Below are positions 8,716 through 16,163 of a DNA stretch of 64,000 nucleotides, one piece after another; position 1 is the stretch's first letter, and each line of letters opens with the position of its first letter. The notes below the pieces were generated by a model that saw only the letters and a program-made list of their open reading frames with translations, was not told the DNA's origin and did no database searches. This DNA is from Ministeria vibrans ATCC 50519 (lineage: Eukaryota; Protista; Filasterea), in the NCBI GenBank assembly GCA_943704425.1, contig CALSCP010002128.1, positions 22,989 through 86,988 on the forward strand, written 5' to 3'. Made by a program: the position numbers and the translations under genes.

Positions 8716-9940
8716 TTAAAGGAGTTTTGCAATGCTGTTAAGTGTGGCCAGGGCGGGACCCGCAATGGAAACGCCTTTGATGCGTTTGGGGATTTCAGGT
8801 TCGCGTGGGTTTATCCGCACAAGACGGGCCTTGGCCCCAGCGAAGCGCACCAGCGACTCGGAAGCATAGCGGACCGTCGGCACTGCGAGTCCTGCGCCCA
8901 TTTCAACCACAACCACATTCTTGCCTGAACAATGTGTGCGCGTGTGAGAGAAAGAGAGAGAGAGAGAGAGAGAGACGATGCCTTGATTTACCTTTGAGGG
9001 GCCGAGTCCATTCTGTGAATCGCTCTTCTTGTGCGTCAGTGCGCTGTGAGGCCCATTTGTCGTCGTTGAACATGAGTACGTTGGGGCGTGCAAGATGTTC
9101 GGTGTTGCGTCGGCAGTGTGGTAAGTCACTGAGCGGGGCGCGAAAGGTCGTCGTGTCCACTTTGAGTGGTGACAGCTCTGAAATGAGACGTCGTGTCAGT
9201 TGAAGGGATGCTGTGAGAATAGCGCCCTTACGTTCGCCAGCGTCGAAAATGGGATCGTCGTCTTTCTCGTGGCACGATGGCTCAGTGCACTGCAGGTGGT
9301 GAATCGAACCATGACACTCCAGGACGCGGTTTGGATCGTAGCCGCTCTTTTGGAATTGTCCGTCAATCTACACACAAAGGGCAAAGAGGATGTTGATGTT
9401 AGTTCGGTAGAGTGAGAATGTAAGTTGGGGTTCTCTTAAACTCACGTTGGAGGTGAACACAAAGTATTTGTCCGGACACCTTTCGCCCCACTCGCGCAAG
9501 ATGCGAAATCCGTCGTGAGCTTCTGTCGCCGCATACAGACCATAGCGGTGTCCAAAGAAGCCCCAGGCAAGCTCGGGATCCTTGTCAAACCACGAAGGAG
9601 TGCTCATCTCGTGGAACTTGAGTCCGAGGTGCTTCATGGGCGGATAGGCTCGCCAGAAGCTGTACAAAGTGTGGATGTTGTGTGAACGATCACATTATAA
9701 GTTCTTGACGACATTTATTTGTACCCTTCGTCTCCACGAAAGTCTGGAAGACCCGAGTCAACTCCCATGCCTGCACCAGCAGCAATGAGAAGAGCGTCAG
9801 CCTACGCAGTGGGCCAGGAAGGAGAGAAAGAGAGAAGGATTGGGTTGATCAATACATACACTTCGAATGTAGTCGGCCGCCTGCTCGAACGATGCAGCAG
9901 AATCGCTCGCCGCCGCCGATGCTGCTGATCTGGAGGCCAT
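8716..9940 (-). CDS. Sir2/sirtuin NAD-dependent deacylase, bacterial-type clade (multi-exon)
   Basis: AGAGMGVDSGLPDFRG, FWRAYP, AWGFFGHR, FTSNVDGQFQK, ECHGSIHHLQC, ARPNVLMF, EMGAGLAVPTVR and LVRINPRE, spread over GT-AG-separated exons. Confidence 0.9.
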
Positions 9941-10090
9941 TCTTGAGAGTAGGATGAGAGTTTGTCGGAGACACAGAATGGTGAGAAGAAAATGTTTGTT
10001 TTGTAAAAATAATAATAATGAATTAGCACTGGAAGTAAATACTGAAAATCGAGTCGCGGATTCTTTTTTGACCAAGTCACAGTGTCCACT

Positions 10091-13208: not shown

Positions 13209-13609
13209 GTAGCACAGAGGTCGGATAGTGAGTTGGTGATTGGTAAATTGAAATAAGTGTGAGTGAAAATTTGTTATTTTTGTATTTTAACGCACAGTCT
13301 GACGGTCGCAGGAAAACAATCACTCTAGCCAGCACTCGGCAGTCATCTCTCTTTTTTTCACTCTTGCATTCCATCTTTTTGGGACTAGCCTATGGAGCCT
13401 GGAGGCATTGTATTACTCTTCATTGTATATTAACTCTTTAGGAAAAAAATTTAATTTCATATGATCAATCACAAACACAAACAAAAAGAAAACAACACTC
13501 ACAGCTCAGAACTGCTCTCTAAGGATAAAGGAATAAATGAATTAAAAAAATTACTCCAATGTCAGTCAAGGAGAAGAAAAAAGAATTAAAAACTACCAAA
13601 TTTATCCGA

Positions 13610-16163
13610 TCAGGATGTTTGCGCATCGCAATGGGCTTGGTACAAGACGAGCTCAGCGTCAATGTCGTACGCTTGTCCATGATCGTGACAGGCTTCCTGT
13701 GCCTGCTGACATGCCCAGCGTGCACTGTGCCACCGTTGTTGACTCGCTTCGTTTCGCCCGATCAGACGCCAGTACATGACGCGAAAAGGCTCATTCTCGG
13801 GACTCTGACCCAACAACTCGTCAAAAGCCAAGGCGGCAAGTAACTCGTTCACAGCAGCAGCATGCTCACCAATACGACTTCGTGCCAATGCCCGGTTCCC
13901 GGAAACGAGCATTGCCATCTTGCGATCGCCAATGCCAATGGCAGTACGACGCGCCTTTGCATAGTGCTCAAGCGCGACTGTGTCGTGGCCGTTGTGCGCG
14001 GCGCGGTCGCCCTGCTGCTTGTGCATAAGACACCATTGCCGCTGGCCATCTTCACTGTCCAAAAAGGCGGGATGATCAAAACGCCCAAGGTCGGCACGCC
14101 ACTCCTGAGGCACCAAGGACACTTCTGTCACGTCCAACCCTTGATGGCTCGTGAATGGCTCCCGCGCAAGTGCAATGGCATCCGCCGAGACATCGCTCGA
14201 GGACAGTTCAAGAACAGATAGATTCGTGGAAACGTGAGCGCCGGGAGGTACTGCAAGTGAGAGGAGCTCCATCGAGTGGAGATCAACCTGGACAGTCCAG
14301 GGAATGGGCAACGCGAGTGGGTTAAACACGAGCCGCAGAGCCGGATCAACGGTCGCACCCCCTTGGTTCAAGAGGTTCTTTACGATGCTGGGAGGCACTC
14401 GTCGAGATGAATTTAAAGGAGTCATTGATCCGCCAATGATACTCGCTTGCTTCGCCACCACCTTGTCAAAGTCCACCGGATAGCGCACAATGACTTTGTC
14501 GGCGTTGTCCACCGTAAGGACTTCGCCGCTACAATGACTACAGGCGAGTCCGTGCCACTCGGAACTCAATCCAATGCTTGACTCGTCTTCAGAAGCATTA
14601 GAGAACATGTCCGCCGCCGACTCGCCAAACTGGACTGCAACCTGCTGCACCATGTCGCGCACCGCGCGTACATCGTCTCGTTGAGTAAACTCGCAGTCTT
14701 GTAACAGCTTGTCACTAATGTGTGCGGCGAGTCGCTCTCTCTCAGCGACGTCGCTGTGCGGCCACGACACGTCGAAGAGACTGCTGACTGCGTCTGGCTC
14801 GCGGAGTGCACTGTTTTCAGGACGGTCGTAGCCACACAACACCGACAGCAAGGTCTCAAACGCAATCCATCCGCGGCGCAAAGAGTCCTGCGGCTCATAG
14901 CAACGGAGCACAAGCATGTTGGTGCGATAGAAGCACCCCATCTGCATCAGAAGCTCGTTGAACAGCTCCTGTTCGCGCATGATTCGTGGCGGTTGCGGCA
15001 GGCAGCAGTAGTCAATCCACACGAGTGAGTTTGGCGCGAGCAAGCGCACTTCGGTCCCGACAAACCCAAGTGATGGTTCGGAGTCAGGCAACATCCTTTT
15101 GGGCGATCCAATGTGGCGGATCGACAGCCGACCTCGTCTGCGAGAGGTGAGCATTTTCTTTGTCTTCCCTTCGGGATCTGGGTGAAATTGGGAATGCCAC
15201 TTGTGCGAAACAAAGAAGAAAGGCTGTCCGGTCCAGCGAACATGGCGGCCCTTAACTTGTTGATAGCGTGGAAACACCTGGAAGGACAACACCACGTGCA
15301 GCGGAAGCAAATGCAACTCGACGTCGCGCGAGAAGGGAATGCGGCACGATCGCACTGGCAAGTCCGTGCGGACCGACACGCCGTAGGGAACATTGACATG
15401 GACCCCGCTGAATTGCTGGATCTGTACCGTCAGCGGCACGTCGGCGAGAAGTGCGCTGACAAAGACCTGCTGCGACTCAATGAAGACAATGTCGCCGCGG
15501 GAGAGGCGCTTCTCCACGGCGCGACACATGACGGGAAACGAGCTGACGGCCATACGCCAGCCGTACTTGCTGCGCATCATCTCAATGTGGTCTAATACGA
15601 GAGAACGCATCTCTTCCAGCGTCATCGACGTGAACTCCACCCAGCGCTGCTCGCTAGGCACAGTGGGCACACGGGTTTCTCCCGCATTCAACATCGCCTC
15701 CTCGAGAAGACTCGCAATGTCCTCTCTTGGACTCAACAGGTGTGCCATGGTCAGGGAGCGGACGGCGTGCGCAGCATGGGCGGAGCCACCGAGACACATC
15801 AGTACACGGCCGTGAGTGTACAGAACCTTCGCGGCCTCGCCAAGCGCCAAAGCTTGCTCACAGCTGGCCAGCGCATCAAGCGGACAGCCAAGGGCAAGGT
15901 GGCAGAGTGCGATGTTGTTGTAGAGCTTGCGGCAAAGGTCGCGGTCAACATCGCGCCGCAGAGAGAGCAACGCGCTCTGATAGTGTTCAATGGCTTCACC
16001 GTGCTTTCCGGACGCAACCAACTCCCTCCCAGTCTGGAGAACGTCGCGAGAGTCAGTGTTCGACGGAGTCACACTGAAAAAATATAATAACAATAGTATT
16101 ATTATTATTTTGAGATTAAGGACCCACACACTCAAAAAGAAGCTTCCCCGCTTCTGCGAACAT
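13610..16163 (-). CDS. TPR-HET-TPR protein (heterokaryon-incompatibility/TIR-like domain flanked by TPRs); probable exons 16163-16132 and 16073-13610
   Basis: N-terminal TPRs (GKHGEAIEHYQSAL, LYNNIALCHLALG). HET motifs FVSHKW..HPDPEG, VWIDYCCLPQ and RRGWIAFE. C-terminal TPRs (ALEHYAKA, GNRALARSRIGEHAAA). A phase-compatible 58-nt 5' intron is inferred. Confidence 0.75.

Follow-up and report, generated by a model that had tools for sequence, protein, structure and literature searches.

Animals, plants and bacteria all rely on TIR enzymes and caspases as mainstays of their immunity. To our knowledge, the sole demonstration of a direct link from a TIR to a caspase is bacterial and concerns type IV Thoeris. 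This system combines a bacterial TIR protein with a caspase-like protease, and an uncharacterised C-terminal domain of that protease has been proposed to receive the TIR signal (10.1101/2024.10.24.620036). For eukaryotes, a recent TIR atlas states that evidence of TIR-regulated cell death in microeukaryotes is as yet lacking, and it saw no immune genes next to the TIRs that amoebae had acquired horizontally (PMC13142454). Here we analyse a locus of the filasterean protist Ministeria vibrans (contig CALSCP010002128.1), at positions 8716-16163 of the 64-kb stretch that we call the window, in which genes for a caspase-like protease, a TIR protein and a protein with TPR repeats and a HET-like domain lie next to each other. 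Because the atlas reports no such cases, a clustered TIR/caspase-like/HET-like locus appears not to have been described already. We propose that the trio is a lineage-restricted, functionally linked module for regulated cell death or immunity in a unicellular eukaryote, a proposal to which we give even chances.

The likeness to type IV Thoeris lies in gene content and in protease architecture: the gene for a TIR protein that has its catalytic Glu adjoins a gene for a caspase-fold protease, and the protease carries a C-terminal domain (CTD), the C-terminal domains being compared by description. The window differs in that it is eukaryotic, with spliceosomal introns around the genes, in that protease and TIR are encoded by separate convergent genes rather than by an operon, in that its protease is without bacterial sequence relatives, and in its extra HET-like gene. 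Four genes make up the interval, namely a sirtuin gene and the trio. Their features, in window coordinates, are the following.

8716..9940, minus strand: sirtuin gene of six exons (exon/intron borders read from the sequence; Pfam SIR2 on exons 2 and 4)
9941..10090, no strand: divergent intergenic region of 150 bp (from the sequence; arrangement repeated in L012, from a second isolate of the species, described below)
10091..11863, plus strand: caspase-like protease gene, intronless, 590 residues, with the CTD (open reading frame)
10142..11140, plus strand: caspase-fold domain (clan CD, C14-like), residues 18-350 (Pfam C14, alignment A1, AlphaFold, Foldseek)
11219..11851, plus strand: CTD of the protease (relatives P0008, P0010, P0011 and the TIR-CTD fusion of L010; confidence of the model as given below)
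12132..13208, minus strand: TIR gene, intronless, 358 residues (open reading frame; Pfam; PADLOC)
12336..12584, minus strand: core of the TIR domain, Pfam-matched residues 209-291, with Glu277 in WCLMEL (TIR_2, PADLOC, alignment to L6)
13610..16163, minus strand: TPR and HET-like gene with one intron of 58 nt (exon 1, 16163-16132; exon 2, 16073-13610; sequence and frame)
13817..14017, minus strand: C-terminal TPR-like stretch, weak (self-similarity E 0.06; Pfam TPR_2 E 0.27)
14633..15289, minus strand: HET-like (TIR-related) domain (family alignment A4; the relative L013 passes Pfam HET)
15782..16033, minus strand: N-terminal TPR repeats, CHIP-TPR-like (TPR_12 E 8e-5, below cut-off; CHIP TPR E 0.009)

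An earlier, sequence-only reading of this DNA took the protein encoded at 10091..11863 for a C14-type protease with intact His and Cys, and structure prediction bears this out, though the Pfam score stays under the cut-off. Peptidase_C14 (PF00656) matches the window protease at E 0.002 with 18.3 bits against a cut-off of 21.4, which a close family member, P0003 (E 2e-33 to the window protease), passes with 24.2 bits; the PADLOC 'caspase' model covers the protease part alone (positions 4-130 of 453, E 0.0023). A sequence search of the PDB with the protease gave no match, and the family profile found caspase-2 as its best PDB match at E 0.17, which is suggestive only. An AlphaFold model was built on a hand-checked MAFFT alignment of the family (A7) with both domains placed correctly. 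Its beta-alpha-beta N-domain, with predicted local distance difference test (pLDDT) values of 60-89, places His140 (HIASHG) after the strand 132-138 and Cys207 (DMCHSG) after the strand 199-205, as in caspases. When this model was compared with the PDB by Foldseek, the MALT1 paracaspase (E 3e-4, probability 1.0) and the metacaspases 7qp1 and 6w8s were returned, as was 3bij; in BFVD the matches were mostly giant-virus C14 proteins and metacaspases, the best at E 4.7e-5. The TM-scores of these matches are modest (0.25-0.42 by target), and Rossmann folds of the PPCS type also appear in the output. The model thus supports a caspase fold for the N-domain of the window protease. MALT1 and the metacaspases (C14) are its best structural matches, with His and Cys at the expected places, whereas in sequence the window protease falls below the family cut-off and has an insertion of ~65 residues between His and Cys. 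The segment that follows the Cys (residues 216-379) is conserved in the family and has low model confidence.

The protease family is tiny. An exhaustive all-against-all HMMER search of 1.84 billion representative proteins with the window protease yielded 11 matches and no bacterial relative, and a word-indexed protein search returned nothing, not even the query itself. Alignment A1 shows the His/Cys dyad in four of the six family members that can be read at both sites; L007, P0003 and P0009 keep it, P0007 has lost it, and P0005 has its His in a degenerate motif and is without the Cys-bearing strand. In L007, the closest relative outside the species (55% identity), the C-terminal part of the caspase-like domain is followed in a single frame by NB-ARC (E 2e-9) and then by TPRs, and in P0007, on L001, the caspase-like domain without His and Cys is followed by a P-loop module with Walker A and B. 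From these sequences, the caspase-like domain appears to be an exchangeable N-terminal 'effector' module of NB-ARC-TPR or P-loop (NLR-like) proteins, and on guilt-by-association grounds this modularity argues strongly that it is a death or immune effector. A one-base frame break was seen in L007 near 1765, in a GC-rich run (L007:1740-1800); an assembly error or a pseudogene could account for it, it was left unrepaired, and the pieces on either side were used separately.

The clan-CD-protease NLR/STAND proteins of fungi and bacteria (CHAT/C14-NB-ARC-TPR) offer a second comparison, as their exact layout is found in the relatives L007 and L001. In contrast, the window protease has the CTD where the NTPase-repeat part stands in those proteins, and it is not an NLR. 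Pfam detects no NB-ARC or NACHT (NOD/STAND) NTPase in any of the three window proteins, whereas such modules are present in L007 and L001. When the sequence-only reading likens the TPRs to the sensors of NLR-like proteins, the comparison is a loose one, since no protein of the trio possesses a NOD/STAND NTPase.

In the window protease, the CTD spans residues 377-587; it is all-alpha and modelled with pLDDT of 70-91. It has no match in Pfam, and its profile has none in the PDB; among the 50 Foldseek matches listed for the full-length protease, which mostly bear caspase, metacaspase or paracaspase names, there was no recognisable match to the helical domain. Four relatives were identified, P0008, P0010, P0011 and a domain fused to a TIR in L010, and a search of viral contigs for the CTD found none. 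Judged from these sequences, the CTD would be a previously undescribed domain that partners either a protease, as in the window, or a TIR, as in L010. The possibility that it forms a homotypic bridge among the three window proteins was considered and dropped, as the window TIR and HET-like proteins show no CTD similarity. As a separate observation, P0011 (L002:458-1042) is a stand-alone CTD relative of 194 residues from peat and wood metagenomes, encoded on gene-dense contigs next to a RING-finger gene, a RecQ helicase and many orphan genes, at a locus recovered in five samples. The contigs concerned, L002-L006, look like those of a giant virus or similar element; that their stand-alone CTD serves as a decoy or sponge is pure speculation.

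L010 is a second locus at which such domains are linked. This 13-kb eukaryote-like metagenome contig was found solely via the similarity of its gene product P0008 to the CTD, and it carries five TIR_2 genes, with P0008 standing as a separate CTD within the TIR cluster. One of the TIR genes is fused to a second copy of the CTD (42 bits, pairwise E 3e-8), and another encodes TIR, zf-MYND and HET-like domains, the last of which aligns with the window HET-like domain over all three blocks (39 bits, E 1e-6). When hidden Markov models (HMMs) of the four domain families were scanned over 301 kb from 39 sources, TIR was confined to the window and the L010/L011 locus, and these were also the only places at which three or more of the four families occurred together. 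Conserved linkage, which had been suggested as a check on the cluster, is thus seen for CTD, TIR and HET-like domains at L010, although this is a single positive case with a narrow TIR control. Because the protease domain is joined to NB-ARC-TPR or P-loop modules in its relatives and the CTD is linked again to TIR and HET-like domains in L010, the grouping in the window would seem to be more than one coincidence.

For the TIR protein, Pfam TIR_2 scores 44.8 bits against a cut-off of 28 (E 2e-11), ThsB-type models of PADLOC match down to E 1e-8, and the WCLMEL motif (residues 273-278, with Glu277) aligns to SKWCLMEL, the motif that holds the catalytic Glu in the TIR of flax L6. The intact WCxxE motif that had been read from the sequence therefore holds, with TIR_2 above its cut-off and the Glu aligned to that of L6; the window TIR keeps the catalytic Glu of NAD-cleaving TIRs and may have NADase or cyclase activity. 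The first 200 residues of the protein have no detectable relatives in the Pfam and PADLOC scans, and an exact look-up of the whole protein gave no record.

The HET-like protein was described in the sequence-only reading as TPR-HET-TPR, and the three parts of this description fared differently: the HET-like domain stands by way of an intermediate, the N-terminal TPRs are weakly detected, and the C-terminal ones are only suggestive. Pfam HET (PF06985) matches neither the whole protein nor the excised domain, even at E 10, and word-indexed searches with the protein and with the excised HET region found no match, including the queries themselves. The domain contains the blocks FVSHKW, WIDYCCLPQ and RRGWIAFE. 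A pattern scan of JGI metagenomes based on a two-sequence alignment retrieved 24 loci with HET-like relatives, and the family now counts more than 25 relatives with the three blocks FVSH.W..HPDPDG, WIDYCCLPQ and R.WC..E; eight residues are invariant in alignment A4, including ID.CC.PQ, the Arg and the Glu. The closest relative, L013 (tblastn 57 bits, E 8e-11), has an open reading frame (ORF) that passes Pfam HET with 29.5 bits against a cut-off of 22.5, and L022 reaches 18.3 bits. At the level of sequence, it is through the intermediate L013, not by a direct Pfam match, that a HET-like assignment of the window domain is supported. The best PDB match of the HET-like profile was the TIR of IL1RAPL2 (E 0.13), with the W...E block aligned to RRGWSIFEL, and the model of the domain, of moderate quality (pLDDT 68), shows three parallel strands with helices. 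The remote homology between HET and TIR domains includes the conserved Glu (PMC9815663). Of the flanking repeats, the N-terminal TPRs match TPR_12 (E 8e-5, under the Pfam cut-off) and the TPR domain of CHIP in the PDB (E 0.009), and the C-terminal TPR-like stretch is a 67-residue ungapped match to the N-terminal TPRs (E 0.06; Pfam TPR_2 E 0.27).

Among described proteins, the fungal HET effectors, including HET-NACHT-WD40 proteins such as HET-E and HET-D, resemble the window protein in the three HET blocks, in the Glu shared with TIRs and in the presence of a repeat domain (here TPR) in the same protein, and L013, as noted, is recognised by Pfam HET itself. The window domain differs from them in being unseen by Pfam HET, in having no NACHT or NB-ARC, in lying internally between TPR-like regions rather than at the N terminus, and in belonging to a distinct WIDYCCLPQ sub-family found on protist-like and a few bacterial contigs. 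Several settings of this sub-family were observed in passing. On L014, a bacterial-looking contig of 55 kb (GC 0.65), the HET-like gene (7695-8963) belongs to a series of orphan ORFs that all point the same way, and a Type ISP restriction-modification enzyme is encoded 3 kb away (12300-15617), a setting like that of a defence island. Relatives also occur in an Acidimicrobiia and a Thermoanaerobaculia metagenome-assembled genome (MAG; L037 and L038), at only ~30% identity, and this level of identity to bacterial HET-like sequences points to an old common domain, not to recent transfer. In marine metagenomes the domain is fused to a tyrosine/serine-threonine kinase domain in a 1353-residue stop-to-stop ORF (L029-L033, for example L029:3981-8039), and elsewhere to ankyrin repeats in ORFs of ~650-720 residues (L028, L032 and L034).

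Judged by sequence, the catalytic residues are intact in all three proteins, namely the His and Cys of the protease, the Glu of the TIR and the Glu of the HET-like domain. If the trio does act as a module, a trigger might be sensed through the TPRs or through the N-terminal part of the TIR protein, upon which the TIR and/or the HET-like enzyme would oligomerise and cleave NAD+. The CTD would hold the protease inactive until the protease is switched on through this domain, either by binding of a nucleotide made by the TIR or by CTD-mediated protein contacts, and the active protease would then cleave cellular targets, with cell death or some other form of defence as the outcome. In this scheme the sirtuin would be an ordinary neighbour, with only the promoter region in common. 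A narrower form of this proposal, in which the CTD is a receiver of TIR-made nucleotide signals that activates whichever effector it is fused to (the protease here, the TIR NADase in L010), is in our estimate unlikely. Were it true, the window would hold a eukaryotic counterpart of TIR-to-caspase signalling of the type IV Thoeris kind, and the stand-alone CTDs in virus-like contigs would become candidate signal sponges.

A number of results weigh against a functionally linked module. Neighbouring genes in eukaryotes do not form operons, and here those for the protease and the TIR converge. The linkage has been replicated once only, in L010, whose organism may simply have abundant TIR genes, and the TIR HMM was built from these same sequences, which makes the 301-kb scan a narrow control. 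No CTD-like sequence was found in the window TIR and HET-like proteins or in two other ORFs of L010; the P0010 contig has the CTD without a TIR nearby, as do the stand-alone CTDs of the virus-like contigs L002-L006; and the other 26 HET-like loci have no TIR, caspase or CTD nearby. The HET-like domain itself has Ile at a nearly invariant Cys of the family (RGWIAFE against R.WC..E), with the invariant residues otherwise kept, and Foldseek with its model gave nothing below E 0.77, in a weak list that includes plant TIRs and the SPARTA TIR.

Alternatively, the three genes could be fast-evolving, lineage-specific death or defence genes that act singly, as a TIR NADase, a HET-like NADase and a protease under the control of its own CTD, and that have gathered in a permissive, rapidly turning-over region, an uncoupled immune neighbourhood that we regard as possible, if somewhat unlikely. 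The free shuffling of domains, in which the caspase-like domain occurs with NB-ARC-TPR, a P-loop or the CTD and the CTD occurs with a caspase-like domain or a TIR, fits single-protein systems, as do the HET-like relatives that are found alone with ankyrin repeats, with a kinase or beside a Type ISP enzyme, without TIR or caspase, and the CTD copies that exist without a TIR nearby. The re-association in L010, which includes a TIR-CTD fusion, is nevertheless hard to explain without a functional tie, at the least between CTD and TIR. In either case the locus provides a concrete and testable protist example, with three adjacent genes, a protease from a family of NLR effectors and a CTD that is swapped between protease and TIR. 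If the genes are coupled, they would show how death signalling based on small molecules or oligomerisation was set up before animals arose; otherwise, two new domain families would still have come to light, the CTD and the WIDYCCLPQ-type HET-like domain of protists and a few bacteria.

It is also conceivable that the trio has nothing to do with immunity and serves ordinary physiology, such as NAD metabolism, proteostasis, development or signalling scaffolds, its adjacency being coincidental. The flanking genes are indeed of the housekeeping kind (ALG11, the sirtuin and a Cupin_8 protein), and metacaspases and SARM1-type TIRs also have non-immune roles. However, the families are very narrow and fast-diverging, unlike housekeeping genes (the few protease matches mentioned above, and no match at all when the HET-like protein was searched by word index), relatives of the protease are fused to NB-ARC-TPR, and the dyad is lost in some members, as is typical of families engaged in arms races. 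We therefore consider a purely physiological role quite improbable.

The sirtuin gene had been counted with the island, and its head-to-head arrangement with the caspase-like gene is real: the two start codons, at 9940 for the sirtuin and at 10091 for the protease, are divergent and 150 bp apart, a spacing compatible with a possible bidirectional promoter. Membership of the sirtuin in a module is not supported. The gene comprises exons at 9940-9860, 9801-9725, 9659-9446, 9367-9232, 9177-8992 and 8924-8716 on the minus strand, separated by five GT-AG introns of 54-78 nt, and encodes the motifs GAGMGVDSGLPDFRG, TSNIDG and ECHGS in canonical order. When the exons were searched one by one against databases, Pfam SIR2 (PF02146) matched exon 2 (E 0.043, profile positions 1-15) and exon 4 (E 0.0016, profile positions 86-116) collinearly, and the best PDB matches of exons 3 and 4, which are weak, were CobB/SIRT5 and Sir2-Af2. 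None of the PADLOC defence models, including SIR2, matched the sirtuin, and the exons contain no SLOG or other sensor domain and leave no space for an extra domain. At L007 the divergent upstream gene encodes a cyclophilin instead of a sirtuin, which is a weak test of the adjacency, as L007 is an NLR gene of the paralogue type; the head-to-head arrangement is otherwise seen only in L012, from the same species. The locus shares with type I Thoeris, with its ThsA, and with other defence SIR2 systems a Sir2-fold, NAD-using protein near a TIR gene, whereas the window sirtuin has canonical deacylase motifs, a PF02146 match and five introns, and is without SLOG or a PADLOC match. Because of its canonical motifs, its five introns, the missing PADLOC match and the cyclophilin in L007, the sirtuin is probably an ordinary bystander of canonical type, perhaps sharing promoter elements with the protease gene.

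Horizontal acquisition of the cluster, which the sequence-only reading had raised as a possibility, finds no better footing. The protease and TIR genes are intronless and the HET-like gene has one intron, so that the grouping of three genes with no or one short intron is confirmed. Their contrast with multi-exon neighbours is only partial: five introns interrupt the sirtuin gene and one or more the ALG11 gene, yet an intron-free ORF of 19.6 kb lies in the same window. The GC content at third codon positions (GC3) of the trio is 0.60-0.65 and its codon preference correlates at r 0.88-0.96, values indistinguishable from those of other window genes. Because the neighbours match in both respects, neither the few introns nor the base composition gives a hint of foreign origin. 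With host-like codon usage, no bacterial relatives of the protease and separate, partly convergent transcription units with eukaryotic promoters of their own, the sequences do not support a horizontal transfer of the cluster.

We find it hardly credible that the locus is a Thoeris-like cassette, sirtuin included, recently acquired from bacteria, an explanation that is already largely refuted. It can draw on the resemblance of the TIR to ThsB-type models (PADLOC E 1e-8), on the HET-like relatives in bacterial MAGs and in a defence-island-like contig, and on the few introns of the trio. Against it, the GC3 and codon preference match those of the neighbours, no bacterial protease relative was found among 1.84 billion proteins, the bacterial HET-like relatives are only ~30% identical, the long intronless ORF makes few introns no mark of foreign origin, and the sirtuin gene, which is split by five spliceosomal introns, encodes canonical motifs and gives no PADLOC match. 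What remains of the proposed immune or cell-death island is thus the trio itself, with its immune-type domains, its intact catalytic residues and its second linkage in L010; membership of the sirtuin and horizontal transfer are not supported.

The ORFs of 358-820 codons are far longer than expected by chance at 55% GC, genes on the contig are dense with introns of 54-78 nt, and the reading frame of the HET-like gene, whose first exon has 32 nt, is kept by one GT donor only. The protease and TIR genes have 268 bp between their stop codons, and ~400 AT-rich bases separate the co-directional TIR and HET-like genes. A Logan assembly of run SRR23272272, L012, corresponds to window 9419-11060 at 99.76% identity and contains the same sirtuin-protease junction, with one residue changed in the protease (Ser to Arg at residue 110); the species has therefore been sequenced at least twice, and relatives occur in the ENA 'SCHR19-1' metagenomes. 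P0001, a partial gene call in another isolate, has the same protease start as the window ORF. Elsewhere in the 64-kb window there are no paralogues of the protease, TIR or HET-like genes, and an Rfam scan of the window gave no match. Two simple repeats were noted, a (CA)n/(GT)n microsatellite directly 3' of the TIR stop codon (window 12085-12135) and a (CT)n run within sirtuin intron 5 (window 8945-8985).

Beyond the locus, the intron-free ORF of 19.6 kb (28079-47686, minus strand) encodes 6535 residues, among them at least 21 reelin subrepeat-B units and domains of the EGF, PA14 and receptor L types. It is followed in its 3' direction by two further minus-strand ORFs, one with EGF repeats (25740-28508) and one for a true tyrosine kinase (24460-25524) with the motifs HRDLAARN and PVRWMAMEV, and the ORFs of window 24460-47686 may be parts of a single giant receptor tyrosine kinase that exceeds 7500 residues. 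The combination of true tyrosine kinases with EGF and reelin modules is what one would look for in a unicellular relative of animals, to which the host probably belongs. The protist that carries the locus thus has animal-type tyrosine-kinase signalling genes, and the window further encodes presenilin, INCENP, ALG11 and an SPB4-type helicase.

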